Virus record (IMG/VR): IMGVR_UViG_3300045996_002337 | Span: 186,001-250,000 of that record | Direction: 5' to 3' (one strand) | DNA: 64,000 bases | In this document: positions 8,452 to 62,801 of the stretch, in pieces | Numbering within the stretch: position 1 is the stretch's first letter | Layout: each line of letters starts with the position of its first letter | The notes under the pieces: generated by a model | Seen by the model: the letters and a program-made list of their open reading frames with translations, nothing else | What the model was told of the DNA's origin: nothing | The model's database searches: none | Made by a program: the position numbers and the translations under genes

Positions 8452-9126
8452 TTATTTATGGGGCCAGAGAAGATCAAAGTTTCCCGCCATCACCCTATCA
8501 CAGGCCGCGGATCGCCCAGTTCGATGATCCTTTACAAGATTATCTTGAAAGCGGTACGTTCGAATTTTATCGCCACGTTCGCCACTTCCAACCTGTGCCT
8601 TGCGATCAGCTGCCAGCTCCAGGAGCTGACCATTTCGGGCAACGGAATTCAGGCGCACCATTATTTCTGTTTTGGCTTCGTTCAGAGAATTTTCACGTGA
8701 GCGGCACTGCGCTGTCACAATTTCACTTGATGGAATGTGCGTGATGCGACACGAATTTTGGTGCTTGTTTCTATGCTGGCCTCCAGCACCCGTGCCAGAG
8801 TACCATTCTATCTTGAAGTCACGCTCATTGAAGGTGACTCGTTTGATCTCTCCTGGATGGATGATTGCCACCGTGACGGTCGAGGAGTGTACCCGTCCCC
8901 GTCTCTCGGTTGGCGGTATGCGCTGAATCCGGTGTCCGCCTGGCTCGTTGTTGAGCTCTGACAGATCCTCGCCGGTTACCTCAATGCTGAGTTCGCGAGA
9001 ATCAATCAGGCGGGTAGTTCAGCCGACGCGTTGCGCGTGGGCGATGTAGGCTTTAGCCAGGTCCTTCACGAACAGCTTGCTGTCCTCTCCGCCTTCGGCG
9101 GCTCGAATCTCAATAATGCGTTTCAT
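8452..9126 (-). CDS. RF1-like class-I peptide chain release factor (224 aa) containing an in-frame TGA at codon 36 (9019-9021)
   Basis: SD GGAG and ATG at 9126: MKRIIEIRAAEGGEDSKLFVKDLAKAYIAHAQRVG-TGA-TTRL...GGHRIQRIPPTERRGRVHSSTVTV...GAGGQHRNK...RSRENS...IRTYRF. PxT and GGQ motifs are intact and in one frame. Confidence 0.85.
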
Positions 9127-9138
9127 AACTTCTCCAAA

Positions 9139-9213
9139 TGGCGCCCCTGGCAGGAATCGAACCCACATTCACGCTTTAGAAGAGCGGTGTATTTTCCATT
9201 ATACGACAGGGGC
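9139..9213 (-). tRNA. tRNA-Arg(TCT)
   Basis: Cloverleaf, loop CT-TCT-AA, encoded CCA. Confidence 0.9.
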
Positions 9214-9219
9214 AGAGGT

Positions 9220-9738
9220 TTATTTTAACTCGTTTTTCTTCTCTATCTCAACTATTTGTTCAAGAACTGCGGTTGGGTTTGTTTCATCTGAAAGTCCCTG
9301 TGCTTCCGTGCGGTGTTCTTGTCTAACATCTAACCGCTCAGCTATCTTGTCAAGCAGCCGGAGGATAGCTGTGCTCTCGCGTTCAGCCAGCAGGTTAATT
9401 TGCAGGTCGAGTTTGTGTCGCTTGTCTGCTTCTTCAGCTAGACGATTCTGACTCAACAAAAGGAAACCAGAAAGGAGAATGGCCTCGAGCGAGACGAGTG
9501 TCGTGAGCAGGGTAAATGGGAACGGATCAAACTGCCATACAGTCAAATTAAGGGTTGTCCAGCCAATGAAGATGGCTAGATGAACGGCGATGAAGCTGAC
9601 GGTGCCAGCCCATTGTGCCACAGTATGTGCCACTTTTTCCGGGATGGATTGTTTCTTGAGCTGATCTTGCTCGTGCACAAAGATCGCCTCGATGTTCTCG
9701 TGGGTGATCTGCACTGGGTCATTAGGTGCTTCATTCAT
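9220..9738 (-). CDS. DUF1003 family membrane protein
   Basis: FDPFPFTLLTTLVSLEAILLSGFLLLSQNR...DLQINLLAE-x-E motif. Confidence 0.9.
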   Translation of the reverse strand: MNEAPNDPVQITHENIEAIFVHEQDQLKKQSIPEKVAHTVAQWAGTVSFIAVHLAIFIGWTTLNLTVWQFDPFPFTLLTTLVSLEAILLSGFLLLSQNRLAEEADKRHKLDLQINLLAERESTAILRLLDKIAERLDVRQEHRTEAQGLSDETNPTAVLEQIVEIEKKNELK

Positions 9739-9752
9739 GCACCTATTTATGT

Positions 9753-9879
9753 TGGTGGTGGCGGAAGGAATCGAACCTCCCCTGGCCGTTTATGAGTCGG
9801 ATAACCAATTACGGACGGTTGAGCTAACAACGAAAGGTGCAATCGATGTTTACCGTGCTGTCCACTACACTACGCCACC
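9753..9879 (-). ncRNA. tRNA/Y-RNA hybrid: tRNA acceptor, D and T arms with CCA, and a ~50-nt Ro60-helix-like domain in place of the anticodon arm
   Basis: GGTGGCG/CGCCACC-A-CCA, D arm, T loop TTCGATT; insert contains TCG-TTG[TTAGCT]CAA-C-CG and GGTTATCC/GATTGC, shared with the Y-like family. Confidence 0.6.
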
Positions 9880-9884
9880 ATGTT

Positions 9885-9956
9885 TGGAACCGCGGATGGG
9901 ATTCGAACCCACACATCAATCCTTCGGAGGGATCGTGCCGTTCCACCGGCCGCGGT
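9885..9956 (-). tRNA. tRNA-Arg(CCG)
   Basis: Cloverleaf with weak D arm, CT-CCG-AA, CCA. Confidence 0.8.
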
Positions 9957-9957
9957 A

Positions 9958-10033
9958 TGGTGCTCTCGTCCAGGCTCGAACTGGATCCTCCGGATTACGA
10001 AACCGGCATACCACCATGTAATACTTCGAGAGC
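9958..10033 (-). tRNA. tRNA-Thr(CGT)
   Basis: TT-CGT-AA loop, CCA. Confidence 0.8.
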
Positions 10034-10099
10034 ATAGCCTAGATTCGATGTGAGCAGTTTCTACTCAAGTCATCAGTCTCTAGGCGGGACTTTAATTGA

Positions 10100-10181
10100 T
10101 CTGAACAAAGCCTTGCGGCGGCGCGGTCGAGGGCGAGTTCAAGTAAAAGTTGATAACCCTGCGGGTGCGATCCGGTTCAGA
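10100..10181 (-). ncRNA. Y-RNA-like small RNA (no tRNA module)
   Basis: TCTGAA-C-CG...GGTTATC...pyrimidine-rich loop...GCC-GCAA-GGC-TTTG-TTCAGA; homologous to 13170..13248. Confidence 0.6.
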
Positions 10182-10193
10182 AATTTTGTGTGT

Positions 10194-10418
10194 TCAAACA
10201 GCTTCGAGACCCTTTGCGTTGACCTCGAGCTGTTTTCGGATGTACCGCATGAAGAGCATGGCCTTGTCTTCCGCAAGGAAGACACCATCACCACAGTCTT
10301 CGACAGGCACGACGAAGTCAAAGCCGTCGTCAGTCCGGTAGTGAAGCTCGTTCTTGCGATACATCATGAAGCGGACCCGTTTTCCAGGTCCGACAAGTTC
10401 TTTCAGAGTGCTCATCAC
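10194..10418 (-). CDS. hypothetical protein
   Basis: 74-aa ORF coupled to 10415..10771. Confidence 0.65.
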   Translation of the reverse strand: MMSTLKELVGPGKRVRFMMYRKNELHYRTDDGFDFVVPVEDCGDGVFLAEDKAMLFMRYIRKQLEVNAKGLEAV

Positions 10419-10771
10419 ACCGTGTCTCCAATAAGATGGGGCGCGAGGTCTGGTCGATCAGGGTACTTCGCATCGATGGCATCGATCGCAAGGTGGGGCG
10501 ACGTGCCTCGATCCAGTTCGTGGATCTTGGAGAAGCCATTTTCCTTCGTGATTAGTGACTCGTGAGGCGAGATGCCGCCACGATACTTGCCATCACCCTT
10601 CTTGTGCATGAGGTTGCCAGTTGCTGGGTCGATCGAGCCCCACTTTGGCGTGTGCTCGGTCTCGATCGGCTCGACGTAGTACGTCTTGCCGGTGCGATAG
10701 GAGTAGACGATGAACCTGCCCGTGTCGTCGGTGCGACGCAGAAACGCGGAATGTACTTCACGGCTGATCAT
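10415..10771 (-). CDS. hypothetical protein
   Basis: 118-aa ORF with good SD. Confidence 0.7.
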   Translation of the reverse strand: MISREVHSAFLRRTDDTGRFIVYSYRTGKTYYVEPIETEHTPKWGSIDPATGNLMHKKGDGKYRGGISPHESLITKENGFSKIHELDRGTSPHLAIDAIDAKYPDRPDLAPHLIGDTV

Positions 10772-10810
10772 CTTCTTTCTCCTTAAGGGTTATGAGCACT
10801 ATTGCTCGGG

Positions 10811-11146
10811 TTAATTTTTCTCGAATTTGGCTTTGAGCCGCTGATACTGAGCAAGTTCGGCTTCTTTCTTTTCCTTGCGTTGTTGCTTCTTGCGCTCCTT
10901 TGCAAGGAGCTCGATGCGTTCCATCAGTTCAGTATGAGCAGCCTCGGACGCAATGCGATCAGCTTCTTGCGCATCGGTTTCAAGCCGTTGATAGACCAAA
11001 TAGATTTCGTTATCGTAGTAGCCGTGCCCCCTCTGGATGACAGCCGACTCAATTTCTTCTGGAGACAAGTTCGCGAGCAAGTCGCTCAAGCGATGCTGAT
11101 TAGTGATTTCAAAGAGTTGAAAGGTTTCGGTAATCTTTTGCTTCAT
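10811..11146 (-). CDS. hypothetical protein (coiled-coil C-terminus)
   Basis: 111-aa ORF, SD GAGG. Confidence 0.65.
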   Translation of the reverse strand: MKQKITETFQLFEITNQHRLSDLLANLSPEEIESAVIQRGHGYYDNEIYLVYQRLETDAQEADRIASEAAHTELMERIELLAKERKKQQRKEKKEAELAQYQRLKAKFEKN

Positions 11147-11164
11147 AAAAACCTCTGTTTATTG

Positions 11165-11238
11165 TGGTGCTCAATGAAGGAATTGAACCTTCTCTTCATC
11201 CTTACCAAAGATGCGTACTGCCATTATACGAAGAGAGC
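11165..11238 (-). tRNA. tRNA-Thr(GGT)
   Basis: TT-GGT-AA; two acceptor mismatches; CCA. Confidence 0.8.
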
Positions 11239-11244
11239 ATGGAT

Positions 11245-11319
11245 TGGTGGTGATGGTGGGAATCGGACCCACGACACAGAGCTTATGAGACTCCTGCTTA
11301 ACCATTCAGCTTCATCACC
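11245..11319 (-). tRNA. tRNA-Met/Ile2(CAT)
   Basis: CT-CAT-AA; CCA. Confidence 0.8.
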
Positions 11320-11324
11320 ATGTT

Positions 11325-11397
11325 TGGCAAGCCTCCATGGATTTTAACCACGACCTCCGTTCGCGACACGGCGCACTGACAATTGTGCTAAAGACTT
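11325..11397 (-). tRNA. degenerate tRNA, anticodon CGC (Ala?)
   Basis: Cloverleaf with GT-CGC-GA loop, atypical T loop TTAAAAT, lacks the usual Ala acceptor sequence; CCA. Confidence 0.5.
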
Positions 11398-11403
11398 ATT
11401 GTT

Positions 11404-11479
11404 TGGCAACCCCGGTCAGACTCGAACTGACGCCCTTCGCGCTCAGAACGCGACGCTCTACCAACTAAGCTACGAGGCA
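11404..11479 (-). tRNA. tRNA-Gln(CTG)
   Basis: TT-CTG-AG, weak 1:72 pair, G73, CCA. Confidence 0.85.
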
Positions 11480-11488
11480 ACTGATTTT

Positions 11489-11562
11489 TGGCGATCCGTA
11501 GGGGAATCGAACCCCTTTCTTACGCTAGACAGGCGTAGATAATACCAATATATGAACGGACC
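11489..11562 (-). tRNA. tRNA-Asp(GTC)
   Basis: CT-GTC-TA, G73, CCA. Confidence 0.85.
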
Positions 11563-11567
11563 ATGTT

Positions 11568-11642
11568 TGGTGCCTGAGAAAGGAATCGAACCTTAGGTCT
11601 ACCGCTTATCAAGCGGGTGCTCTACCATTGAGCTACTCAGGC
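11568..11642 (-). tRNA. tRNA-Ile(GAT)
   Basis: TT-GAT-AA, CCA. Confidence 0.9.
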
Positions 11643-12012
11643 GTTTTTTGTTTCCTTTGCCACCTTTGGATGAGGCGGCACGGTGCATTTCCTTCCATCG
11701 CTCTTCACCGTATTTCGCGACGTTTTTCGCATATTGCGACGACCATGTTCCCGCTGCTTTTTGATCAAACAGATTGTCACTGGGCGTTCCCCAATACAGA
11801 TGTTTAGGGTTTGAACACGCGTGAACATTACACGCGTGGCACAGAAGGATCTTCATGCCTGCAGGAATTGTCGTTTTAAGCGTGTGAGCTAAAAGACCTC
11901 GATAATGACGGCTGTCCGCTCCTCCAATGAGAATACAGGGCTCAGTCAAATCTAAATGCGCAATACGTTCTGCCCGAGAGCGCTGTATATAGGCTTCAAT
12001 GTCTTCAAACAT
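11599..12012 (-). mobile_element. free-standing HNH (His-Me finger) homing-endonuclease-like gene inside the tRNA array
   Basis: LLCHACNVHACSNPKHLYWGTPSDN motif; own TATAAT promoter near 12019; stop codon lies inside tRNA-Ile. Confidence 0.7.
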
Positions 12013-12032
12013 GATGCATTATAACACAAATT

Positions 12033-12107
12033 TGGTACTCCTGACGGGTTTCGATCCCGCTTCTCAACCTTGAAAGGGTCGTGTCCTAGCCACTAGACGA
12101 CAGGAGT
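12033..12107 (-). tRNA. tRNA-Glu(TTC)
   Basis: CT-TTC-AA, CCA. Confidence 0.85.
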
Positions 12108-12109
12108 AT

Positions 12110-12183
12110 TGGTACCTGCAGAAGGAATCGAACCTTCTTCTCAACGATGTCAACGTCGCGCTCTACCATTGAGCTATGCGGGT
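12110..12183 (-). tRNA. tRNA-Val(GAC)
   Basis: TT-GAC-AT, CCA. Confidence 0.9.
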
Positions 12184-12189
12184 GATGTT

Positions 12190-12264
12190 TGGCGCCGACG
12201 ACGGGACTCGAACCCGCCTAAACCTCATAGACAGTGAGGTGTTCTCCCTGAGAACTACGTCGGC
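12190..12264 (-). tRNA. tRNA-Asp(GTC)
   Basis: CT-GTC-TA, G73, CCA. Confidence 0.85.
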
Positions 12265-12270
12265 AATGTT

Positions 12271-12346
12271 TGGCAAGGGAGGTGGGACTCGAACCCACAA
12301 CAGGCGCATTCAAAGTGCGGTGCTCTACCAATTGAGCTACTCCCCA
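12271..12346 (-). tRNA. tRNA-Gln(TTG)
   Basis: CT-TTG-AA, CCA. Confidence 0.9.
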
Positions 12347-12366
12347 ACAGAAATTTATGTCTTAAG

Positions 12367-12448
12367 CTCCACGATCTGGGCTCGAACCAGACTTGATCTT
12401 TCGATCGCGGATTAACAGTCCGCTGCCACACCCGGCGGCTCTCGTGGA
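12367..12448 (-). tRNA. tRNA-Asn(GTT)-like with long variable arm, no encoded CCA, flanks extend the acceptor stem
   Basis: GCGGA-CTGTTAA-TCCGC; GATC-GAAA-GATC variable arm; CTTAAGCTCCACGA/TCGTGGAGCTTAAG 14-bp stem. Confidence 0.65.
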
Positions 12449-12476
12449 GCTTAAGACACTTACATAATGTTCTTTG

Positions 12477-12548
12477 CTCCAGAGGCAGGGATCGAACCTA
12501 CGACGGACGCATTAACAGTGCGCTGCTCTACCGCTGAGCTACACTGGA
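12477..12548 (-). tRNA. tRNA-Asn(GTT), no encoded CCA
   Basis: Canonical cloverleaf; leader TGTTCTTTGC pairs with trailer GCAAAGAACA. Confidence 0.85.
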
Positions 12549-12577
12549 GCAAAGAACACGTTTCAAAAATACTTAGG

Positions 12578-12651
12578 AGTGACCAGAGGGACTTGAACCC
12601 TCATTATCTGCATTCACAGTGCAGCGCGTCTACCAATTCCGCCATGGCCAC
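12578..12651 (-). tRNA. tRNA-His(GTG), no encoded CCA
   Basis: CT-GTG-AA; leader ACTTAGG pairs with trailer CCTAAGT; C at -1 and T73 are atypical. Confidence 0.75.
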
Positions 12652-12668
12652 GCCTAAGTATTCTTACT

Positions 12669-12744
12669 TGGTACGTCTGAGAGGATTCGAACCTCCAACC
12701 TGAGCCTTCGTAGGACCCTGCTCTTCCAGTTGAGCTACAGACGT
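12669..12744 (-). tRNA. tRNA-Arg(ACG)
   Basis: CT-ACG-AA, CCA. Confidence 0.9.
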
Positions 12745-12750
12745 ATTGTT

Positions 12751-12826
12751 TGGTAGGGGCACAGGGATTCGAACCCTGACTTGACGGATTAAAAGTCCGC
12801 TGTGATAACCATTTCACCATACCCCC
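12751..12826 (-). tRNA. tRNA-Lys(TTT)
   Basis: CT-TTT-AA, CCA. Confidence 0.85.
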
Positions 12827-12841
12827 GTTAGGAGGTACGTT

Positions 12842-12887
12842 TGGCAGACGCGCTAGGCGTCGAAGACATTTGTCGCATTGCGCGTCC
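12842..12887 (-). ncRNA. 46-nt mini-tRNA-like element
   Basis: GGACGCG...CGCGTCT-G-CCA acceptor stem enclosing a small GACA-AA-TGTC hairpin. Confidence 0.4.
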
Positions 12888-12900
12888 TTTCTTTGTTGAT

Positions 12901-12972
12901 TGGCATCCCGTCAGAGAGTCGAACTCTGTCCATGCGTTTTGGAGACGACAGGCCCTAGCCGTAGGCCGAGAT
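12901..12972 (-). tRNA. degenerate tRNA-Trp(CCA)
   Basis: CT-CCA-AA loop, intact T arm and CCA, irregular D arm and anticodon stem. Confidence 0.6.
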
Positions 12973-12984
12973 ATTAACTTGATT

Positions 12985-13078
12985 TGGCTCCCTCGGACGG
13001 ACTCGAACCGCCATATTACGCCTTACGGCCTTTACGTCTGATTAACAGTCAGGTCTCTTACCATTAGAGTACAAGGGA
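12985..13078 (-). tRNA. tRNA-Asn(GTT) with 24-nt variable region
   Basis: CT-GTT-AA; variable arm GCC-GTAA-GGC; G73; CCA. Confidence 0.8.
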
Positions 13079-13086
13079 ATAGAACT

Positions 13087-13161
13087 TGGTGCGCCTCCCC
13101 AGAATCGAACTGGGCTCTCTCCGGTTAAGAGCCGGGACTTCGCCAGCAAAGTTTGAGACGC
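13087..13161 (-). tRNA. tRNA-Lys(CTT)
   Basis: CT-CTT-AA, CCA. Confidence 0.8.
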
Positions 13162-13169
13162 GAAGAAAG

Positions 13170-13248
13170 TCTGAACAAAAGCCTTGCGGCGTGCGGTCTC
13201 AAGGAGGTTCAATAAAAGTGATAACCTTGAAGTTGCGAGCGGTTCAGA
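13170..13248 (-). ncRNA. Y-RNA-like small RNA (no tRNA module)
   Basis: TCTGAA-C-CG...GGTTATC-ACTTTTA...GCC-GCAA-GGC-TTTTG-TTCAGA; homolog of 10100..10181. Confidence 0.6.
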
Positions 13249-13253
13249 TTGTT

Positions 13254-13328
13254 TGGCGCTCCGTAGGGGTTACGATCCCCTCTAGCCAGGTTGAAAGCCT
13301 GGTGACCTCACCAGATGTCTAACGGAGC
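13254..13328 (-). tRNA. tRNA-Glu(TTC)
   Basis: CT-TTC-AA, CCA. Confidence 0.85.
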
Positions 13329-13334
13329 ATTGTT

Positions 13335-13410
13335 TGGTGGGCCCTCACGGAATCGAACCGTGTCCTTCGGAGCTTCAATCCGACGTACGCACCAGCTATA
13401 CCAAAGACCC
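13335..13410 (-). tRNA. tRNA-Phe(GAA)
   Basis: TT-GAA-GC, CCA. Confidence 0.85.
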
Positions 13411-13418
13411 ATAAATTT

Positions 13419-13494
13419 TGGCTGGCCACCGCGGTCTCGAACCGCGAACCCCTGGTTTTGGAGACCAGTGCTCTGCCAATTGAGCTAGTGACCA
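13419..13494 (-). tRNA. tRNA-Trp(CCA)
   Basis: CT-CCA-AA, G73, CCA. Confidence 0.9.
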
Positions 13495-13498
13495 ATAT

Positions 13499-13735
13499 CT
13501 ATTTCTTCAACGCTCTAGAAGTCGAGGTCGCCTTGAGAGCTTAGTCCAACCGCCGTACGAACGTTGAAGAAATAGTCCATTGCCACCGAGGTGGTACGAG
13601 AATCCTCTTCCGAGAATCCTCCAATGGACTAAAACATATCCATCCCTTTTCGCGCTCGGCAGTCTGAAGAGTACTCGACTGATTCATGGCGGTCCATCTT
13701 GTTTATATCCCGCGAGATGTAGCAACGCGGTAAAA
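13499..13735 (-). ncRNA. structured non-coding leader (several long hairpins)
   Basis: 13-bp IR tatttcttcaacg/cgttgaagaaata, 10-bp IR tagtccattg/caatggacta, direct repeat cgagaatcct x2. Confidence 0.4.
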
Positions 13736-13744
13736 ATTGTCTCT

Positions 13745-13790
13745 AAAAAACAACCCAGGGTCCAATCTTTCGAGAGGACCCTGGTTCTTG
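13745..13790 (-). terminator. intrinsic terminator (attenuator) upstream of tRNA array 1
   Basis: AACCAGGGTCC-loop-GGACCCTGGGTTG followed by TTTTTT on the minus strand. Confidence 0.85.
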
Positions 13791-13808
13791 TGAGTGTGGA
13801 AGAAGCGC

Positions 13809-13946
13809 TTAGCTTACTTTCCTCCCTAGAACCAGGGACGTATCGGTGATAATCTCATCATTTCGCTTATTCTCGAAACGCACAGAGACGTCTTGGCTTT
13901 GTTGCCAATGCATTTCTGTTTGTTTAAAGAAGGTTACGAAGTTCAC
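13809..13946 (-). CDS. putative 45-aa leader peptide (attenuator)
   Basis: SD AGGA then GTG; MNFVTFFKQTEMHWQQSQDVSVRFENKRNDEIITDTSLVLGRKVS*; its 3' part GTCCCTGGTTCT is complementary to the terminator 5' arm. Confidence 0.55.
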   Translation of the reverse strand: MNFVTFFKQTEMHWQQSQDVSVRFENKRNDEIITDTSLVLGRKVS

Positions 13947-14061
13947 GATAAGTTCCTAGTAAGGTTGTTCTGTTGCGACGCTTGCACGTCTTGTTAAATC
14001 TATATATGCGATTTCTCAGAAGTTCAGCGATTGCCTTCATCCTGTGAAGATCAGTTTGTTT

Positions 14062-14198
14062 AACCGATGAAGCAATTATAACATGTCTTCACCGTTTGTA
14101 CACTATCTTTTTCAACCTGTTGTTTGAAGCAGCTTCGTTATGTTGCTGCTTGTTCTCAACCGATGAAGCAATTTTAACACACATGGAGCCGATGTACA
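14062..14198 (-). promoter_or_regulatory. two tandem sigma70-like promoters with a duplicated downstream sequence
   Basis: TGTACA-N16-TATAAT (14102-14075) and TGTACA-N16-TAAAAT (14198-14171), each followed by TGCTTCATCGGTT. Confidence 0.7.
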
Positions 14199-14217
14199 CA
14201 CAAAGAGTGTAACTCTT

Positions 14218-15039
14218 TCAGGTCGGTTTTGGCAACTTGATCTTCTTCAGCCCAAGAATGAAATCGTTGGCGATGAGGTCATTGTCGTCTACGATCGGGT
14301 CAAGAATCACTATTTGACCGTCGCGCAGTGCAAGGTTGCGGTCTGCCACATCATAGCGGTCGTATTTACCCATCACCTTAGCCAGTTTCACAGAGATTGC
14401 CATCAATTCAAGCACATCGGGATTCAGCTTCTCAATGTACTTTGACAAATCTGCACCTTCAATGTCTGAGTCCTCAGCATGGTAGTGAAGCATTTCGATA
14501 AGCGCGGCGCGCGGGTTGTTACCCATGCCTCCCCATTCAAACACCGTTTCGATCGACGTGTAGTTCTCAATGTCGTTGAACTCCATGCCAATCTCTTCAA
14601 GCACCTTCCGGTCCTTGAAGAGCCACAGTACGCTGTCGCCTTTGAATGGTTGAAGAAGCTCCATCTTCACGTACTTCAGACCGCGGAGGATTTCGGCATC
14701 AGCTTCAAGATTATCCGGATCTTCTTTCGCGGACTTCAAATTTAGAAGACGCGGGAGATGCTTGATTTTTGATTTGAACTTTGGCAGCCATCGCGATGGG
14801 TTCTCCATGCAGAACTCAACGAACTTTTCGTAGGCACTGTCACGATGCCAGAACTTGTACACCTTTTCGCCATCAGTTAGGGCGAGGGCATTCGCACCCC
14901 TTCCCAATGGGCGCAGCTTGGTAACCCCAGCATCGATAGCTTGCTGAAGGCGCTGTAAGACAGCAGCAACATGGCTCTCTTCGTCATTTTGCGAAGGCGC
15001 CGTGATGGATTTAATGCCGGTGAGTTCAAGTAGATTCAT
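14218..15039 (-). CDS. Ser/Thr protein kinase-like protein (T7 gp0.7-like fold)
   Basis: LGRGANA G-loop, VYKF lysine, YDVADRN catalytic loop, ILDP. ORF track start 15093; likely start 15039. Confidence 0.7.
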   Translation of the reverse strand: MNLLELTGIKSITAPSQNDEESHVAAVLQRLQQAIDAGVTKLRPLGRGANALALTDGEKVYKFWHRDSAYEKFVEFCMENPSRWLPKFKSKIKHLPRLLNLKSAKEDPDNLEADAEILRGLKYVKMELLQPFKGDSVLWLFKDRKVLEEIGMEFNDIENYTSIETVFEWGGMGNNPRAALIEMLHYHAEDSDIEGADLSKYIEKLNPDVLELMAISVKLAKVMGKYDRYDVADRNLALRDGQIVILDPIVDDNDLIANDFILGLKKIKLPKPT

Positions 15040-19014: not shown

Positions 19015-19032
19015 TTACAGAGGATTATAACG

Positions 19033-19260
19033 TCAATAGAGGCTCTTGTACATAGTTGCCAGCATCTGTTTGGCAACTTTGCGACCTTCTTCCGTAATGA
19101 ACGCATGGTTAAAGTGATGATTGGAACAATGGCGGGCGGCCAGTCCGTTTCGCTCAAGCTCAATGATGTGGCCAGCGTGGGCGTCGACAGACATCGGCGT
19201 TTGCCCTTCATCCAAGGCAAGCAGGACAATAGCTGCCCCATGACATGAGAGTGAAGACAT
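19033..19260 (-). CDS. hypothetical protein
   Basis: 75-aa ORF. Confidence 0.5.
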   Translation of the reverse strand: MSSLSCHGAAIVLLALDEGQTPMSVDAHAGHIIELERNGLAARHCSNHHFNHAFITEEGRKVAKQMLATMYKSLY

Positions 19261-43219: not shown

Positions 43220-43249
43220 ATTATAACCAACATCATGAACCTTGTACAC
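43220..43249 (-). promoter_or_regulatory. sigma70-like early promoter (representative copy)
   Basis: TGTACA(43248-43243)-N17-TATAAT(43225-43220); same spacing at 48246-48274 and 49924-49952. Confidence 0.75.
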
Positions 43250-48220: not shown

Positions 48221-48285
48221 TTTGTTTCCTTCGTTGAAAAATTCAATTATACAACCTATGGTTAGGGCTGTACACAGTGTAAAAA

Positions 48286-55166: not shown

Positions 55167-55243
55167 TGGTGCCCAAGGTCGGACTCGAACCGACAGATTG
55201 CAGGTTTTGAATCTGCTGCCTATACCAATTCGGCTACTTGGGC
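55167..55243 (-). tRNA. tRNA-Leu(CAA) with short variable arm
   Basis: TT-CAA-AA, A73, CCA. Confidence 0.75.
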
Positions 55244-55390
55244 AGTATTTAATTGACACCTTTCGTTTCGTAGCCAAATTACGAGAACCTTCTCCAGTCA
55301 AGGGAGCGTTTGTCGTAAAATCAAACCACGGTCTCGAAGAAGCAAGGTGCGTTCCGAGGCGACTAACTCTCAGTAGCACGTGTCAAAACT

Positions 55391-55484
55391 TGGCGGTGAC
55401 GATGGGATTCGAACCCATGGAGCCCGATGAAGGACCCTCTTCCTTAGCAGGGAAGTGCAATAAACCTGGCTCTGCCACGTCACC
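55391..55484 (-). tRNA. tRNA-Ser(GCT)
   Basis: CT-GCT-AA, long variable arm, G73, CCA. Confidence 0.9.
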
Positions 55485-55696
55485 ATAAATTCTTGCGCGC
55501 TGGTATTCGTTGCAGAACGACTTGTAGCTTTCACCTACCAGCAAGATCCAGTTGCACACCGTCAGCCACTGGCAATCTCCACCTCCGCACTCTTAAGGGC
55601 CGCTGAGGTCTCCCTAGCCTTCTTAACGAATCAGACCAAAACGTTCCTTTAGAGTCAAGGACAACTACCACATAGACGCTGTGGCCTCGCGAATTC

Positions 55697-55783
55697 TGGA
55701 GGAGAATAACGGAATCGAACCGTCACCTGTAAACAAATGGGCTGGCTTTCGAAACCAGTTACGCGCCATGCGTCCTATTCTCC
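55697..55783 (-). tRNA. tRNA-Ser(CGA)
   Basis: TT-CGA-AA, long variable arm, CCA; 5' part overlaps the NADAR stop. Confidence 0.8.
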
Positions 55784-56211
55784 ATGACTAACTTCCAGAG
55801 ATCAGCTCGAATTTCCATCAGCATGATCCCCAGCCTGTTCTTTCCAACACCTCGGCAAACTCCCCAGTACGTGTCGTTCCAGTGGTTAGTTTCCTCGATG
55901 TAAGCATCTCCTGTTGCCAAGAGCTGCGTCATAAACGGTTCCTGTGAGAACTTCTGGATCAAGAGGTCTCTCATGACGTCCTCTTTGATCTGTTCCCAAT
56001 CTTCTCGAATCTGAATCACGCGACCAAACTTCTTTGCCTCTGCGCCAGAAGCCGCCCTTGCGATCTTCTTTCTAAGCTCAATGTCAAGCGTCTTTGCCGC
56101 CTGGTATGCGTGTTCAGTGGATGGAAACGCGACGCCTTCAAACTGGACCCATACGGACCAAAAGTTTGACAGGAACCTATGGTCTCCGCTAAATCCCTTG
56201 ATCTCGTCCAT
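55759..56211 (-). CDS. NADAR (YbiA/DUF1768) family protein
   Basis: FLSNF...STEHAYQAAK...KFSQ...LLATG...E-x-x-x-W-x-D-x-YWG...GKNRLG-x-x-LME-x-R. Confidence 0.92.
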   Translation of the reverse strand: MDEIKGFSGDHRFLSNFWSVWVQFEGVAFPSTEHAYQAAKTLDIELRKKIARAASGAEAKKFGRVIQIREDWEQIKEDVMRDLLIQKFSQEPFMTQLLATGDAYIEETNHWNDTYWGVCRGVGKNRLGIMLMEIRADLWKLVMENRTHGA

Positions 56212-56224
56212 CTTAGTTTCCTAT

Positions 56225-56332
56225 TGGCTCCCCAACCTGGGCTCGAACCAGGGACCTGCGGATTAACTAGAACACCCGATAAACCAGATGTTCGGTGTCA
56301 GTCCGACGCTCTACCAACTGAGCTATTGGGGA
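56225..56332 (-). tRNA. tRNA-Asn(GTT) interrupted by a 32-nt insertion in the anticodon loop
   Basis: Canonical Asn body; loop reads CTG[ACACCGAACATCTGGTTTATCGGGTGTTCTAG]TTAA; removing 32 nt restores CT-GTT-AA. Confidence 0.8.
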
Positions 56333-56338
56333 ATTGAT

Positions 56339-56665
56339 TTACCAGCTAACGGTAACGTTTGCGATAAAACCGTTGCGGCTGTTCACCGTTACTGTAAAGC
56401 CATCATTCTGCATGAGAACAACCGCGGCTTGCAGCTGATCGTCAATTTCTTGTTCGGTTAGGTGAAAGATCCCCAGCGCCCCGATTGAAACGTTGACGTT
56501 TAACGTCTTCGTAAACAGCCCAGCTTCAGCAGCATTTGAAACGGCGTTCTCGACGCTTCCATAGAAGCTGTTCATGACTTCAGCCTTCGTTGCGTCCTTA
56601 GCTTCAGGCGTGGTCAGAAGTGCAAGCTGTTCAACAGCGCGGGCATTAGCATCACTTGCTAGCAT
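56339..56665 (-). CDS. hypothetical protein
   Basis: 108-aa ORF, SD AAGGA. Confidence 0.65.
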   Translation of the reverse strand: MLASDANARAVEQLALLTTPEAKDATKAEVMNSFYGSVENAVSNAAEAGLFTKTLNVNVSIGALGIFHLTEQEIDDQLQAAVVLMQNDGFTVTVNSRNGFIANVTVSW

Positions 56666-56679
56666 AACATTTCCTTAAT

Positions 56680-56763
56680 TGGTGCGTACGGGGAGACTCG
56701 AACTCCCAATCCTTTCGGCGCTGGCTTCTAAGACCAGAGTGTATACCATTCCACCACGTACGC
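56680..56763 (-). tRNA. tRNA-Leu(TAG)
   Basis: CT-TAG-AA, variable arm, CCA. Confidence 0.9.
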
Positions 56764-56865
56764 ATTGTTTGGGTGACTAAAAGCCGGTGGGGTATCCGAG
56801 GTCAGGCTTCAACTCCATCCTCTTCCCATCCTCCGTTTACTTTCCTTACTTTCAGTCAGTTGTTT

Positions 56866-56939
56866 TGGTTCCTCTAGGTGGAATTGAACCACCGTCAGCC
56901 CCTTATAAGGAGGCCGCTCTACCATTGAGCTATAGAGGC
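56866..56939 (-). tRNA. tRNA-Ile(TAT)
   Basis: CT-TAT-AA; G1.A72 mismatch; CCA. Confidence 0.8.
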
Positions 56940-56940
56940 A

Positions 56941-57273
56941 TCAGATGGCAAAGCACTCAGCATGAGCTTTCACGTGAGTGAGAACATCACCACGGGCTGC
57001 AAAAACCTTTGTGCTATCATCAAACATCTTGGCATGAACGACCACTTTGCGGGTATTTCCAATGGTCACACCGCGAAACGTCTTGCCTGTAACCGTGATC
57101 TCGCACTCAATGCTGTCGTTGAAATTGTTCTTGATAACGCAGCGACCAGCCGACTTATTCCACAGACACCCTGGAGTAAGCTCAACGAGATCACGTTGTC
57201 GCTCTTGCCCATGTGAGGCAAGTGACATGAAAAGTGCAAATGCACCGATAAAATAAGCAGCAAGTTTCTTCAT
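56941..57273 (-). CDS. hypothetical exported protein
   Basis: Signal peptide, 4 Cys. Confidence 0.65.
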   Translation of the reverse strand: MKKLAAYFIGAFALFMSLASHGQERQRDLVELTPGCLWNKSAGRCVIKNNFNDSIECEITVTGKTFRGVTIGNTRKVVVHAKMFDDSTKVFAARGDVLTHVKAHAECFAI

Positions 57274-57481
57274 GTCAACATCTCCAACGTGGGGTTATTT
57301 GATTTCGTATTTGTCCGTTTTTCGGTATTAGGGTTCAGCGGTAACCCAGGGAATTCTTGATGGGCCAGGGTAAGCATCCATCATGTCCTACTTCGCCCGT
57401 TGCAGCTCCGGCTTTCGCGAGATACTGACGTGTCTAAGGACTTTGCGTCTGTCGGTGCACCGACAGGGTCGCCAAATTAAC

Positions 57482-57618
57482 AAAGCATAGAAACAACAAA
57501 AGGCGCTATCGGGAATTCCTGCCCCTGGACCACCTGCAGGATGCCACGAATCGAACGGGCTTGGGTTTATTTCCAATAATAGTAGATAACCGACAACAAA
57601 CGGTTGATTCTATGCTTT
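57482..57618 (-). ncRNA. Y-RNA-like RNA with degenerate T-loop module
   Basis: AAAGCATAGAA terminal stem; CAA-C-CG / TTG-TTG helix; GTTATC/GATAGC; TTCGATT hairpin. Confidence 0.55.
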
Positions 57619-57864
57619 GCCAACATTGGTGCGGGTGGAGGGACTTGAACCCTCAAAGCCGAAGCTGTCGGATTTTAAGTCCGATGTGGTTACCGATTTC
57701 ACCACACCCGCGCGTGTGATCCCCTCTGTTATCTCTAAAAGAGCGTCGAAACATTTTCCACAATTCATTGCACAGTTCGTTTTCATCATGATCTCTTCCG
57801 TCGTAAGAGGGAGAAGATCACGAATTGTCTGTTCAGAAACTCCAGCACAGATACAAACGATCAT
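57610..57864 (-). CDS. bfd: Bfd-like [2Fe-2S] ferredoxin whose frame runs through tRNA-Leu(TAA)
   Basis: MIVCIC...CGKC motif; own TATAAT promoter at ~57870. Confidence 0.75.
   Translation of the reverse strand: MIVCICAGVSEQTIRDLLPLTTEEIMMKTNCAMNCGKCFDALLEITEGITRAGVVKSVTTSDLKSDSFGFEGSSPSTRTNVGKA
57627..57711 (-). tRNA. tRNA-Leu(TAA)
   Basis: CT-TAA-AA, variable arm, CCA. Confidence 0.9.
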
Positions 57865-57903
57865 GAATCATTATAACACTAGTGGGAGCTAAGTGGAACC
57901 TAT

Positions 57904-58077
57904 TTACCGAAGAGCGATCATGCGCGAACGAAGACGTTCTTCATTGTCATACTCCGAGATCCAAAATTCAATCTCCTGTGGAGATTGCGGGTTCTTCGAA
58001 GCGACGAAACGTTCGAGCGCCGTCATTTGACGGGTGGAGAAAGCCTGCTTAAGCCAAGCGAAAATACGTGAGATCAT
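57904..58077 (-). CDS. small protein, DUF3563-like (57 aa, not in ORF track)
   Basis: MISRIFAWLKQAF...LERFVASKNPQSPQEIEFWISEYD. Confidence 0.5.
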   Translation of the reverse strand: MISRIFAWLKQAFSTRQMTALERFVASKNPQSPQEIEFWISEYDNEERLRSRMIALR

Positions 58078-58318
58078 GGTTCATGATCCTTTCTTTAAAA
58101 AGTTCCTTGTGGGAACGGTTTAGTGAAAGGCAGAACCGACATCCATCGACTACTCTGTTGAGTGATCCGCCATAGCCAACATTATTTACAGGTCTTGCTT
58201 CTTGTTAGGCTCTGTCCGCGCCTTTGCCACCGCGTAAGCGACAAAACGAACAGTAGCAACAAGCGCGATAAGACCCTTCAAAAACTTACTCATACGATCT
58301 TTCTTACAGTGGTGAAAA

Positions 58319-59266
58319 TTATCTCTCTACAATCACCAGCGTTCCCTTCTCAACGAGGTCAGCAACTTCAAGCGCGTCCCAGTTAGTGAGACGAATGCAG
58401 CCGTTAGAAGCGGTCTTTGAAATCTTTGAAGGTTCTGGTGTACCGTGAATTCCGTAATGCTTACGCGACAGCGCGATCCAGACTTCGCCAACTGGGTTGT
58501 TGGGGCCTGGACGAAGTGTTACCTTGGTGTTTGTCCCTGGGCTGACAAAGCGTTCAGGGTCGTAGTTGTAATACGGGTCCTTTGCGACTGCGACGACCTT
58601 CAGCTGACCAAACGGTGGAGGGCTCTTAGGAGAACCAAGCGTCGTTGGGTAGAAGCCGATAAGCTTCTCGCTGGCGTCATAAATGCGTACCGAACTTTCG
58701 GACTGGCTTACGACGATCTTCGCTACCTTCGTCGACAGGGTTTGCCCAACGCCCGGCACCTTGAGGACCGTGCCCTCAACAAGCTCAACGTCAGGATTCA
58801 ATTTCTTCAGCAGCTTCGGGCTGATCTGGAACTTCTCACCAAGCGCTTCTTCAAGCGACGTGTAGTGGAGATTGCCAGCCTTGCTCATACCCAGCATCGT
58901 ACGGGGGATTGAACGTTTGAGTGGCTGGTTCACATCTTCAGCCGTCAGTGTGTAGCTTACCATCAGGTCCGAACCGTTGTCACCCAGAGCGGTGAGGGTT
59001 GGCTGATCAATTTCTCCAGATGGCTCGAGACCTTTCTCTTGTTGGAAAGCTTTCAGCGAGCGCCGAACATTCGAACCCATCACGCCGTCAATTTCACCAA
59101 CTGAAAAGTGCCAACGATCGAGAAGGACTTGAACGCGTAGTGTCTGCGTGAACTCCTGTTCCTCGGTCATTTGTGGTGCTGAAGCAGGCTTAGCTGCTGG
59201 AGCAGGGGTCTGGGCCATCGCAGCAGAAACGCTGAGGGCCAAAAAGGTCATCAAGATCTTCTTCAT
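58319..59266 (-). CDS. L,D-transpeptidase (YkuD) with peptidoglycan-binding domain
   Basis: Signal peptide; QVLLD...GEIDG...ALKAFQ PG-binding domain; YGIHGT...ASNGCIRL. Confidence 0.92.
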   Translation of the reverse strand: MKKILMTFLALSVSAAMAQTPAPAAKPASAPQMTEEQEFTQTLRVQVLLDRWHFSVGEIDGVMGSNVRRSLKAFQQEKGLEPSGEIDQPTLTALGDNGSDLMVSYTLTAEDVNQPLKRSIPRTMLGMSKAGNLHYTSLEEALGEKFQISPKLLKKLNPDVELVEGTVLKVPGVGQTLSTKVAKIVVSQSESSVRIYDASEKLIGFYPTTLGSPKSPPPFGQLKVVAVAKDPYYNYDPERFVSPGTNTKVTLRPGPNNPVGEVWIALSRKHYGIHGTPEPSKISKTASNGCIRLTNWDALEVADLVEKGTLVIVER

Positions 59267-59311
59267 GTCATCTCCTTACGATCATCAGATCTATTTAGAA
59301 GATAACGAATT

Positions 59312-59433
59312 TGGAGCGCCGCCGAGGAATCGAACCTCTGATGCCAAGGTTGATCAGACCCAGCCTTATTTCCAACGTGAGTCACATCGATTGCTCGACA
59401 CTCACATGGTGCTACCATTACACCAAACAACGC
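59312..59433 (-). ncRNA. tRNA-like RNA without anticodon (GNRA-capped long arm)
   Basis: Acceptor plus T-CCA, D and T arms; GTGAGT-GTCGA-GCAA-TCGAT-GTG-ACTCAC replaces the anticodon arm; ~36-nt variable region. Confidence 0.6.
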
Positions 59434-59437
59434 ATAA

Positions 59438-59568
59438 AGCAACAAAGGAGCGATAACGAGTCTGCCTTTCGGCGAGGCGGCTGTCCTACCATTAGACTAC
59501 AGCTCATTGAGCCGGCGGGAATCGAACCCACGTTAACTGCTTGGGATAAACGTCATCTATCGGTTGCT
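59438..59568 (-). ncRNA. YrlA-like Y RNA (permuted tRNA module)
   Basis: GCAA-C-CGA...T arm (GTGGG TTCGATT CCCGC), acceptor closed by a loop (CGGCTC AAT GAGCTG), D arm (GTCT AATGGTA GGAC)...GCC-GAAA-GGC...TTG-TTGC. Confidence 0.75.
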
Positions 59569-59760
59569 AATCTTTTCACTCGGCCGGTGCGGTGGCTGAG
59601 GGCTTGGGCCACTTGTTAGGCTCCATTCCCCATGCTGCCCAGCGCTGCGCCCAAGTTGCCCAGTTCGTGGTGTTGTTGCCCGCGCACCGAATCGCACGTA
59701 GGGCCTCTTCCATCGAAGAAGGTTCTGTATTCAGGTCTTCGTTCATGCTGCGTTCCTTAT

Positions 59761-59847
59761 TGGTACGGGTGAGAGGATTCGAACCTCCATGGTCGCGATG
59801 ACCAACGCCTTCTGAAGACGCCGCGGCTCCCTTTTCGCCACACCCGC
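59761..59847 (-). tRNA. tRNA-Leu(CAG)
   Basis: TT-CAG-AA, variable arm, CCA. Confidence 0.8.
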
Positions 59848-60181
59848 AAATTTATGCGCCCACCTTCCGAGTACACGACTTCAAAGCATTCACCTTAGCA
59901 GCATAGTAGGATTGAGCTGACGTTCTCGAGTCCAACGAAATTAAGGCTTACTGTTCTCATGGGAAGTTGCCTCACGGACAGTTCATTCTACACGTTGACT
60001 AATTTGTAGTCAACTTGGAACACTGACAAACCAACCTGTTGACGGCGGGTGCCGGCTTTCAATTTATCGACACAGAAAAAGCGGGAACGGCTCTGTACTC
60101 CACAGCTCGAGGGAATTAGAGGGAACAGTGCGAAACTACTTCCCGAGGTCCTGCTTCCGCGGCCTCATATATCTAACTAAG

Positions 60182-60255
60182 TGGTTGCGGAGCCACGGAA
60201 TCGAACCGGCCCTTAGGGTTATGAGCCCCACGTGCTACCATCACACTCGCCCGCA
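60182..60255 (-). tRNA. initiator-like tRNA-fMet(CAT), irregular
   Basis: GGG/CCC anticodon stem, 1:72 mismatch, CT-CAT-AA, CCA. Confidence 0.7.
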
Positions 60256-60370
60256 ATTGATCGTGTCGTGGCAGGTTCTCGTAGGACACCTGCGTTTTGG
60301 TTGTCGACGTGTTTCCTCGACTTGGATTAGTCCAAGGAGTTCACTCACGTCTTTTGTCTACGACTTTGTT

Positions 60371-60460
60371 TGGAGGAGAAGGTGGGATTCGAACCCACGG
60401 GCCCCTTACGGAACCTCAACCTTTCCAAGGTTGTGCAATCGGCCGCTCTGCCACATCTCC
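60371..60460 (-). tRNA. tRNA-Ser(GGA)
   Basis: TT-GGA-AA, long variable arm, CCA. Confidence 0.9.
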
Positions 60461-60466
60461 ATTGTT

Positions 60467-60552
60467 TGGTGGGTCATCTAGGATTCGAACCTAGTGTGGC
60501 CGAAGCCGACGGGGTTACAGCCCGCTGCAGTCGCCAATGCTGCTCACAACCC
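60467..60552 (-). tRNA. tRNA-Tyr(GTA)
   Basis: CT-GTA-AC, variable arm, CCA. Confidence 0.9.
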
Positions 60553-60631
60553 AATGTTCTTGAACGACCTCAGACTTTTTATGTCGTTCGTTGCTGACAT
60601 TATCACCGCCACGTTCGCGGTAGTCAAATCT

Positions 60632-60749
60632 TGGTGGGGACTCGTGGGCTCGAACCACGGACCTACTAGATGTCTACTTTCTGCATGGACAATGGGCGCC
60701 GTTCCATGCAGTTTCGCTCTAATCGCTCTACCAACTGAGCTAAGTCCCC
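60632..60749 (-). ncRNA. tRNA-like RNA with a hairpin inserted in the anticodon loop
   Basis: Near-consensus acceptor, D and T arms plus CCA; loop holds a CTGCATGGA/TCCATGCAG hairpin; no clean 7-nt anticodon loop. Confidence 0.65.
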
Positions 60750-60842
60750 ATTTCACAGAACACACATCGAATCAACTTGTTCCCTTGGGCAGGAACACGC
60801 TGCAGGCGCTTGATTCTTTCCACTAATGTATGTGCTGTGAAA

Positions 60843-60919
60843 TGGAGCGGACAGTCGGATTCGAACCGACACTTCAAGTTTGGAAGACTCACGTGCTAAC
60901 CGTTGAACACTATGCCCGC
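60843..60919 (-). tRNA. tRNA-Gly(TCC)
   Basis: CT-TCC-AA, T73, CCA. Confidence 0.9.
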
Positions 60920-60954
60920 GCATAAACCAAGTGTTAAGGCACTTGGACACTATT

Positions 60955-61030
60955 TGGTGCCCCCACTACGATTCGAACGCAGGACCCCCGCATTACAAGT
61001 GCGGTGCTCTACCAACTGAGCTATAAGGGC
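60955..61030 (-). tRNA. tRNA-Thr(TGT)
   Basis: CT-TGT-AA, CCA. Confidence 0.92.
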
Positions 61031-61162
61031 AAAATTACAATGATTGAGTCCACCCTCAAACTCTCTTACTCTTGGATGGAAATGTCTTGTCTTCGCAAAG
61101 GCGACCCCGAAGAGTTATCCGAATCGCCACGGACTTCAGCCGCTAAGCCGCATCAATCAAAC

Positions 61163-61249
61163 TGGTGGGTACTGTAGGATTCGAACCTACTCACGCAATA
61201 GCGAACGGGGTTACAGCCCGCTTCAGCTCTCCAACTCTGACGAGTACCC
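61163..61249 (-). tRNA. tRNA-Tyr(GTA)
   Basis: CT-GTA-AC, variable arm, CCA. Confidence 0.88.
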
Positions 61250-61260
61250 ATAAAACTAAA

Positions 61261-61321
61261 GTCAACAAAAGATACGGCGAGGGGTTGCCTAATGAATGAT
61301 AACCCTCAACCTACGGTTGAC
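61261..61321 (-). ncRNA. minimal Y-RNA-like RNA (61 nt)
   Basis: GTCAA-C-CG...GAGGGTTATC...CCCCTC...TTTTG-TTGAC. Confidence 0.55.
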
Positions 61322-61326
61322 AAATT

Positions 61327-61401
61327 TGAGATTCGAAGAAGGAATCGAACCTTCGTTGCCCGACTTTAATGTGGGGTGCGTTACCACTACGCCATTCGAA
61401 T
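61327..61401 (-). pseudogene. pseudo-tRNA, anticodon unresolved (loop contains ATTAAA)
   Basis: Good acceptor, D and T arms; distorted anticodon arm; 3' end C-TCA. Confidence 0.5.
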
Positions 61402-61406
61402 GTTTG

Positions 61407-61479
61407 TGGAGGTAGGGAGGATCGAACTCCCGACATCTAGCTTGCAAAGCTAGCGCTCTCCCAGCTGAGCTATACCCCC
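61407..61479 (-). tRNA. tRNA-Ala(TGC), no encoded CCA
   Basis: G3.U70, TT-TGC-AA. Confidence 0.88.
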
Positions 61480-61613
61480 GAGATTTGGCGGGCAAGTAGC
61501 CTTCAATAGGGGCCCAATCCTATGAAGCGGTATCGGATCTACAAGACAGAAGACCTTCCATTCCGGTTTTTGATGTCTGACGCTTAGCGTAACCGGCGAA
61601 ACATTCAGCTGAT

Positions 61614-61688
61614 GTAAGACGGCAGGAGTCGAACCTGCAAAGTATCCCGTGGTCGGTGTGCCAATTCCCGTTTAACTACCACGTCTTA
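61614..61688 (-). ncRNA. tRNA-like RNA lacking an anticodon arm
   Basis: TAAGACG/CGTCTTA acceptor, GCAGG-TTCGACT-CCTGC T arm, GGAATTGGCA D-loop-like segment. Confidence 0.5.
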
Positions 61689-61694
61689 ACATTT

Positions 61695-61770
<76 letters not shown>

Positions 61771-61999
61771 ATAAATTCTTGGGAAGCTGTTAACTTACGC
61801 TAGACCGCTCCCCACGTCGTCGCAGCCGAATCAAAGCTTCGGAAGGCTTTAGGACCGGCATAGTTTCCACAGCCGGGCTCCACCACTCGGTGTCTAATGT
61901 CACCGAGACCATAGGGCAATTATCGGCCAGGGCCCCTCAACAGTGTTCCGACACCGTAAGATGTGGTACCGTCCATCGCTTTCACGACGCTGTTGTTCT

Positions 62000-62076
<77 letters not shown>

Positions 62077-62112
62077 AATGTTCTATTTAGCAATTATATT
62101 ACATGTGCTTTG

Positions 62113-62188
62113 TCTGGGCGACAGGATTCGAACCTGCGACCTCTCACTTCCAAGGCGAGCCGTCTGACCTGACTGACAATACGCCCAG
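62113..62188 (-). tRNA. tRNA-Pro(TGG), no encoded CCA
   Basis: CT-TGG-AA; leader TGTGTTTTGT pairs with trailer ACAAAGCACA. Confidence 0.8.
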
Positions 62189-62360
62189 ACAAAACACACA
62201 TAAACAAAAGATTGTTGAAGCTTCCTCTTGAGGCTCTGGGCCGGTTTTATCGGGATCCCAGCTGGGCCTTGTACCCAGTCAACAAAACTTTATTGAAATC
62301 GGCGGATCTAAACAGCCTCCTGGCGTCCTAAACCCCGGATAGGGGAACCGAAATATAACT

Positions 62361-62444
62361 TGGTGCGCTCGGGGAGACTCGAACTCCCACGCCTTTCGGC
62401 ATCAGTCCCTCAAACTGACGTGTCTACCGTTCCACCACGAGCGC
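62361..62444 (-). tRNA. tRNA-Leu(GAG)
   Basis: TT-GAG-GG, variable arm, CCA. Confidence 0.9.
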
Positions 62445-62520
62445 TTTTACCTCTGAATTTTCCTTTTGAGAAGGTGTGCGTTGACAGTTTGGACAGAGCA
62501 ACGCCCAGAAACACATGAGA

Positions 62521-62613
62521 TGTTGAACGACGGGATTCGAACCCGCACATTGCGCCGGTGATTAGCCGGTGCTAAGTATACCAATTCCTCACGTTATGCA
62601 AACACGTTCAACA
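62521..62613 (-). ncRNA. tRNA-like RNA, anticodon AAT, 9-bp acceptor, 12-nt insert before the D arm
   Basis: TGTTGAACG/CGTTCAACA; CT-AAT-CA loop; T arm intact; no CCA. Confidence 0.55.
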
Positions 62614-62794: not shown

Positions 62795-62801
62795 AATTCT
62801 G

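Follow-up and report, generated by a model that had tools for sequence, protein, structure and literature searches.

Putative codon-matched leader-peptide attenuators in front of the tRNA arrays of a giant uncultured phage

Leader-peptide transcription attenuators are known from proteobacterial amino-acid operons (trpL, hisL, leuL, thrL, ilvL and pheL; for pheL see PMC3082878) and from pheST, in which a short ORF led by a Shine-Dalgarno (SD) sequence sits upstream of the regulated genes and the position of the ribosome decides whether an intrinsic terminator forms or an antiterminator which shares a strand with it. T-box riboswitches (Rfam RF00230) also couple tRNA status to a terminator/antiterminator choice upstream of translation-related genes; however, these bind uncharged tRNA directly, need no ORF and are bacterial, mostly from Firmicutes. 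Phage tRNA arrays have been studied as counter-measures to host tRNA loss or anticodon nucleases (PMC10264068, PMC11555353, PMC11464382), yet why phages carry tRNA genes has been debated for decades, the main ideas being codon compensation, the replacement of degraded host tRNAs and escape from anticodon nucleases. Here we describe a locus in which a short ORF and a terminator/antiterminator switch precede each of the two tRNA arrays of one phage, and in which each ORF is built from the codons read by the tRNAs of its own array, thus suggesting that tRNAs are made on demand when decoding slows.

Organisation of the leader 1 locus

The window analysed is a stretch of 64,000 nucleotides (positions 186,001 to 250,000) of a 349,660-bp uncultured viral contig, IMGVR_UViG_3300045996_002337. 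The features are collected in Table 1. All of the elements proposed in an earlier sequence-only reading, namely promoters, an SD, a 45-codon ORF, a U-tailed terminator and an alternative pairing with the terminator 5' arm, were found to be present on the minus strand, with minor corrections: the shared strand starts 20 nt after the stop codon and the terminator stem 22-24 nt after it, rather than 19, and the complementary strand covers the last base of codon 36 to the second base of codon 40. A simple terminator scan missed the hairpin only because its loop limit is 8 nt. The two promoters are near-identical and belong to a motif family, TGTACA-N16/17-(TG)TTATAAT, for which 18 hits were found in the window against 2.2 expected, nearly all on the minus strand, and which is probably the main promoter class of the phage. 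A conserved TATATAGA box lies between the second promoter and the SD. No promoter-like site was found between the terminator and tRNA-Trp (13745..13495).

Table 1. Coordinates of the features of the two leaders and their surroundings. Coordinates are those of the window unless preceded by L025 (DNA of the same contig reaching beyond the window end) or L035 (a relative that carries leader 2).
Feature	Coordinates	Strand	Remarks
Distal phage-type promoter	14171..14198	-	TGTACA-N16-TAAAAT
Second phage-type promoter	14075..14102	-	TGTACA-N16-TATAAT, with TG before the -10; conserved in relatives
Conserved 16-mer	14062..14077	-	Directly after the -10; identical copy at 14158..14173; the same box follows three promoters in front of array 2
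Conserved GCATATATAGA box	13999..14009	-	Possibly the -10 of a proximal promoter (inferred); present about 30-45 nt upstream of the SD of both leader types and in relatives
SD	13954..13957	-	AGGA, 7 nt before the GTG start; (T)AGGA or AAGGA conserved in most relatives
Leader ORF 1	13809..13946	-	45 codons plus TAA; codons 2-36 form the proposed sensing part
Mid-ORF hairpin	13893..13908	-	TTGGC-N6-GCCAA, containing the single conserved Trp codon; candidate RNA polymerase pause hairpin (inferred)
Antiterminator 5' strand	13828..13837	-	CCCTGGTTCT, inside codons 37-40
Stop codon	13809..13811	-	In the apical loop of the antiterminator structure
Shared strand	13779..13788	-	AGAACCAGGG; pairs with the antiterminator strand or, in part, with the terminator 3' arm
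Terminator hairpin	13755..13784	-	Arms CCAGGGTCC (13784..13776) and GGACCCTGG (13763..13755); 9-bp GC-rich lower stem, short upper stem, invariant CGAAAG apex; dG about -22 kcal/mol
U-tract	13745..13753	-	TTGTTTTTT; T-rich tail conserved in all relatives
First proposed gated transcript segment	13641..13730	-	CCGCG/CGCGG hairpin (13710..13730), then a near-invariant RNA core of about 55 nt (13641..13695) with unknown function
Two long hairpins	13499..13631	-	Vary between relatives
tRNA array 1	9139..13494	-	23 tRNAs, starting with Trp-CCA, interspersed with small ORFs
Release-factor-like ORF	8460..9168	-	GGQ motif; in-frame TGA at about 9019..9021; directly after the last tRNA of array 1
Unusually long tRNA genes	12985..13078, 12366..12448 and 56228..56332	-	Asn-GTT at 94 and 83 nt; one Rfam-only tRNA with an insert of about 32 nt after the anticodon
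Ser tRNA, anticodon ACT (ARAGORN)	63782..63871
Lone tRNA-Arg(CCT)	42.6 kb		No leader; inside a protein operon
Examples of the promoter motif	19024..19052, 43220..43248, 48246..48274	-
Roughly 50 tRNA genes, in two arrays	9139..13494 and 55167..63952; L025 4903-14100		Split by amino acid
Leader ORF 2	L025 3864-3962		GTG start, 32 codons; about 1.3 kb past window position 64000
Leader ORF 2 with terminator/antiterminator	L025 3864-4015		About window-equivalent 65250-65400
Three phage-type promoters with the conserved GCTTCATCGGTT box	L025 4038-4485		Between leader 2 and the first tRNA
tRNA with a CUA anticodon	L035 8377-8453		Amber-suppressor type
Region covered by a soil metatranscriptome contig	13650..13787		Contig of 253 nt; relative about 82% identical

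The alternative helix consists of 10 contiguous Watson-Crick pairs and uses 6 of the 9 bases of the terminator 5' arm. When the terminator 3' arm is left out of the fold it becomes the minimum-energy structure, a long irregular hairpin, whereas with the full sequence the terminator wins. A small local hairpin (CCCUG..AGGG) could compete with the antiterminator. Compared with random 36-nt windows of the same locus, the duplex energy gives p = 0.002 for the window alone and 8e-20 when combined over 10 relatives, although the latter are not independent.

Conservation of the ORF and covariation of both helices in relatives

A DNA similarity search of 50,697 phage records found only tRNA-Trp matches and no relative of the leader, and homologues of the 291-aa gene upstream of the leader were at most 46% identical and not syntenic. 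However, a soil metatranscriptome contig of a diverged relative was found which runs from the leader end across the terminator to about 95 nt beyond, with no differences listed within the hairpin; this is either read-through RNA or DNA carry-over. Otherwise, searches of sequencing runs gave no RNA run that clearly holds this phage, the contigs aligned being relatives or tRNA look-alikes. Exact-pattern scans with the hairpin and with a conserved motif just downstream then recovered leader-bearing loci from IMG/VR and JGI metagenomes, together with a 10-kb contig at about 1x coverage (JAUMAI010000012.1) which carries leader 1 and an array-1-type tRNA array and is binned in a Pirellula sp. MAG; the latter is either a weak host hint or a mis-binned phage contig. 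With those found by synteny there are sixteen leader loci in diverged uncultured phages, of which about 10 are distinct leader-1 lineages once duplicates are removed. All of these share the same order: promoter(s), SD, ORF, switch, a conserved RNA core and then tRNA-Trp as the first tRNA. The RNA core is also found in an unrelated AT-rich 141-kb phage contig, where it lies next to tRNA-Tyr and tRNA-Thr without any leader. It is not coding, has only one covarying pair and has no Rfam match at E<=10; likewise, no Rfam match supports the "Y-RNA" label given to part of the array in the sequence-only reading.

Every leader-1 lineage has an ORF of 40-45 codons with ATG or GTG and, in most lineages, an SD. 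All length differences in the peptide-guided codon alignment are whole codons, and synonymous differences are near saturation (pS 0.46-0.91) while pN is 0.16-0.56, giving an uncorrected pN/pS of 0.36-0.67. In three of the relatives, L011, L020 and L014, the CCCTGG strand sits one base out of phase, yet the frame returns before the stop; in L011 and L020 the stop stays at the same place in the loop whilst in L014 it falls a few codons earlier. This indicates selection on the RNA strand and on where translation ends. In all leader-1 relatives the stop codon lies 7-17 nt after the antiterminator strand, and always between the two antiterminator strands.

Both of the mutually exclusive helices show compensatory changes in a 12-sequence alignment. 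In the antiterminator (12 pairs) 86% of cells are paired and 5 pairs have changes on both sides, for example TTCT/AGAA becoming TCTT/AAGA, TTCAAG/CTTGAA or GGAG/CTCC, whilst sliding the partner strand by 1-3 columns drops pairing to 18-53%. In the terminator (15 pairs) 89% of cells are paired and 4 pairs are changed on both sides, the central T-A pair having flipped to A-T in two separate clades. For neither helix did any of 500 shuffles reach the covariation score. Two mutually exclusive, individually conserved helices are the signature of a switch. One pair of the mid-ORF hairpin also shows a UA to CG compensatory change, in 4 sequences.

Codon content of the leaders and the tRNA arrays

In this genome and in every relative examined the tRNAs are partitioned into two arrays. 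That behind leader 1 carries Trp, Phe, Glu, Lys, Asn, Arg, His, Gln, Asp, Met, Val(GAC/CAC), Ile(GAT) and Thr(GGT/CGT), and in the window also a single Ala tRNA, whereas the other carries Val(TAC), Tyr, Ala, Ser, Cys, Thr(TGT), Leu, Pro, Gly and Ile(TAT). Upstream of the antiterminator strand, the leader-1 peptides contain 0-4 residues in 30-35 from L, S, Y, G, P, C and A, which make up 38% of the long ORFs of this phage (P of 6e-7 to 1e-3 per lineage). The match is not perfect, as a few wrong-set codons occur (Ser in the window, Cys in L011 and L014); otherwise such residues appear only in the last 9 codons, which are constrained by the RNA switch.

The DNA beyond the window end was retrieved in order to look upstream of array 2, and a second leader was found there. 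Its ORF is rich in Leu, Ser, Ala, Gly, Pro, Thr, Val, Cys and Tyr, using five different Leu codons and three Ser codon types once each, and is followed by a hairpin with the same apex, a T-rich tail and a 9-bp antiterminator between the last codons of the ORF and the hairpin 5' arm. Within this one genome, the counts of set-1-only to set-2-only residues are 24:2 in leader 1 and 3:18 in leader 2 (Fisher p = 7e-8). Five further leader-2 lineages were found, one by the hairpin scan and four through homologues of the syntenic upstream gene, with different peptide sequences but the same composition. All sit in front of arrays that start with Val(TAC), followed in four of the five by Tyr, and each folds into the same antiterminator architecture (L035 and a second relative, L045, were assessed by folding rather than by the duplex test). 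The antiterminator strand, shared strand and 3' arm change together, for example GACCC/GGGTC, GTCCC/GGGAC and GCTCCC/GGGAGC. Further scans of IMG/VR for leader-2 relatives found only the window's own contig and L035. A tblastn search with the 217-aa gene upstream of leader 2 found nothing in cultured phages, and although the neighbouring RNA-ligase gene finds Ralstonia phage RsoM2USA and Caulobacter jumbo phages, the RsoM2USA region has no tRNA array; no cultured model phage was identified.

The strongest control comes from Thr, Val and Ile, which both arrays serve. Leader 1 uses the codons read by GGT, CGT, GAC and GAT whereas leader 2 uses ACA, GTA and ATA, the counts being 55:5 against 14:14 (p = 3e-5), and for Thr alone 30:4 against 4:10. 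Peptide chemistry cannot explain this synonymous codon choice. In addition, leader 2 samples 16 of 19 array-2 anticodon species in 27 codons, against 9.0 +/- 2.1 expected at random (P = 0.002), and only 6 of array 1. For leader 1, however, coverage of array-1 anticodons is only modestly above random (15 of 19 against 12.3, P = 0.09). The pooled p-values should be considered with caution as the relatives are phylogenetically related and independence is therefore overstated, but the within-genome contrast and the two independent leader families do not depend on this.

Proposed mechanism and comparison with known systems

The locus is best explained as a ribosome-mediated transcription attenuator controlling a phage tRNA array, a reading in which we have fairly high confidence although it rests on anatomy, conservation, covariation and codon match rather than on experimental evidence of translation, termination or read-through. 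This supports the core of the sequence-only reading, in which the array is transcribed when translation is impaired, and sharpens it, as each of the two leaders is made of codons served by its own array; the wider circuit that it proposed with the UGA-containing RF gene and the RNA-repair genes is neither supported nor refuted. The direction of the switch is inferred from geometry and from the established logic of attenuation. With fast translation, the ribosome would sit on the antiterminator strand, or just past it at the stop codon in the 27-nt loop between the two strands, without reaching the terminator stem, so that the terminator forms and the array is not transcribed. A ribosome which lags or stalls in codons 2 to about 32 would leave the strand free to capture the shared strand before the 3' arm is made, and the polymerase would read through into the RNA core and the tRNAs. 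The circuit is therefore best read as a negative feedback on tRNA supply, in which a shortage of any tRNA species of an array, for example after host tRNA loss or cleavage, switches that array on. The mid-ORF hairpin, and GC-rich mid-ORF hairpins in leader 2, are candidates for the pause that couples ribosome and polymerase. In front of array 2, however, three promoters lie downstream of the leader-2 terminator, thus this array can be expressed without passing the attenuator, which can only modulate transcription arriving from upstream.

Other explanations appear unlikely. A real RNA switch set by a trans-acting factor, such as a phage or host RNA-binding protein, a small RNA or direct tRNA binding, would equally produce covariation in both helices; the invariant CGAAAG apex and the near-invariant RNA core could be protein-binding sites, and leader-1 peptide residues overlap conserved RNA hairpins. 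Yet a factor-binding model does not predict that codon content tracks the array down to synonymous choice, nor would the ORF be more than secondary, whereas its start, frame and stop position are kept in all 16 leaders of two unrelated sequence families. Somewhat less likely still is an arrest or release sensor, as in TnaC, in which the nascent peptide or the speed of release at the stop codon decides how long the ribosome blocks the antiterminator. The leader-1 peptide does conserve W-Q and R-F-E-R beyond what a pure codon sampler needs, the stop codon always lies inside the antiterminator loop and an RF-like ORF lies downstream of array 1. However, part of this conservation is accounted for by covarying RNA hairpins, leader-2 peptides share composition but almost no sequence, so that no arrest motif is conserved there, and the codon-array match is left unexplained; moreover, slow release would increase termination and so lower expression of the RF gene, which is not homeostatic.

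The possibility that this is an ordinary small protein gene with its own terminator, and that the alternative pairing is fortuitous, is already disfavoured and seems very unlikely. Hairpins of the form GGGNCC-N3-CGAAAG-N3-GGNCCC followed by a T run do end ordinary protein genes in other phage contigs, and the peptide is under some purifying selection. However, the compensatory pairs in the alternative helix, the strand kept in a different reading frame in one clade, the recurrence of the design in a second leader family with unrelated sequence, the lack of a promoter between the terminator and array 1 and the codon match to the arrays all stand against it.

It is, in our view, somewhat more likely than not that large phages run their tRNA arrays as demand-driven modules, each switched on only when one of the tRNAs whose codons are test-translated by its leader runs short. 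This would be the first case of leader-peptide attenuation that controls tRNA genes and the first built-in sensor of tRNA depletion in a virus. Such an element makes the question of why phages carry tRNA genes directly testable, as it predicts that the arrays are induced by tRNA shortage and which tRNA species each array responds to. The leaders are also small (about 200 nt), portable parts which could in principle serve as reporters of the availability of defined tRNA sets in laboratory bacteria.

The cargo and likely purpose are the same as those in the studies of phage tRNA arrays as counter-measures to tRNA loss, although those studies concern the tRNAs themselves, and no report of a translation-sensing control element in front of the arrays was found in the literature searched, which is not proof of its absence. 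With the T-box riboswitches the locus would share the coupling of tRNA status to a terminator/antiterminator choice, but no Stem I/specifier or T-box sequence was detected and no Rfam family other than tRNA matches 13450..14250 at E<=10 or the window at gathering score. It is the leader-peptide attenuators of the amino-acid operons and pheST which are most similar: here too there is a short SD-led ORF, an intrinsic terminator, an antiterminator which shares a strand with it and leader codons which name the thing being regulated, while a mid-leader hairpin could act as a pause site. In the folds examined no clear 1:2-type anti-antiterminator was found, so that, unlike trp, an untranslated leader should read through rather than super-attenuate. 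The cargo is tRNA genes rather than enzymes or a synthetase, and the element is viral. In place of a run of one or two regulatory codons, the leader samples about 12-13 amino acids and about 15-16 anticodon species once or a few times each, and two such leaders in one genome divide the genetic code between them.
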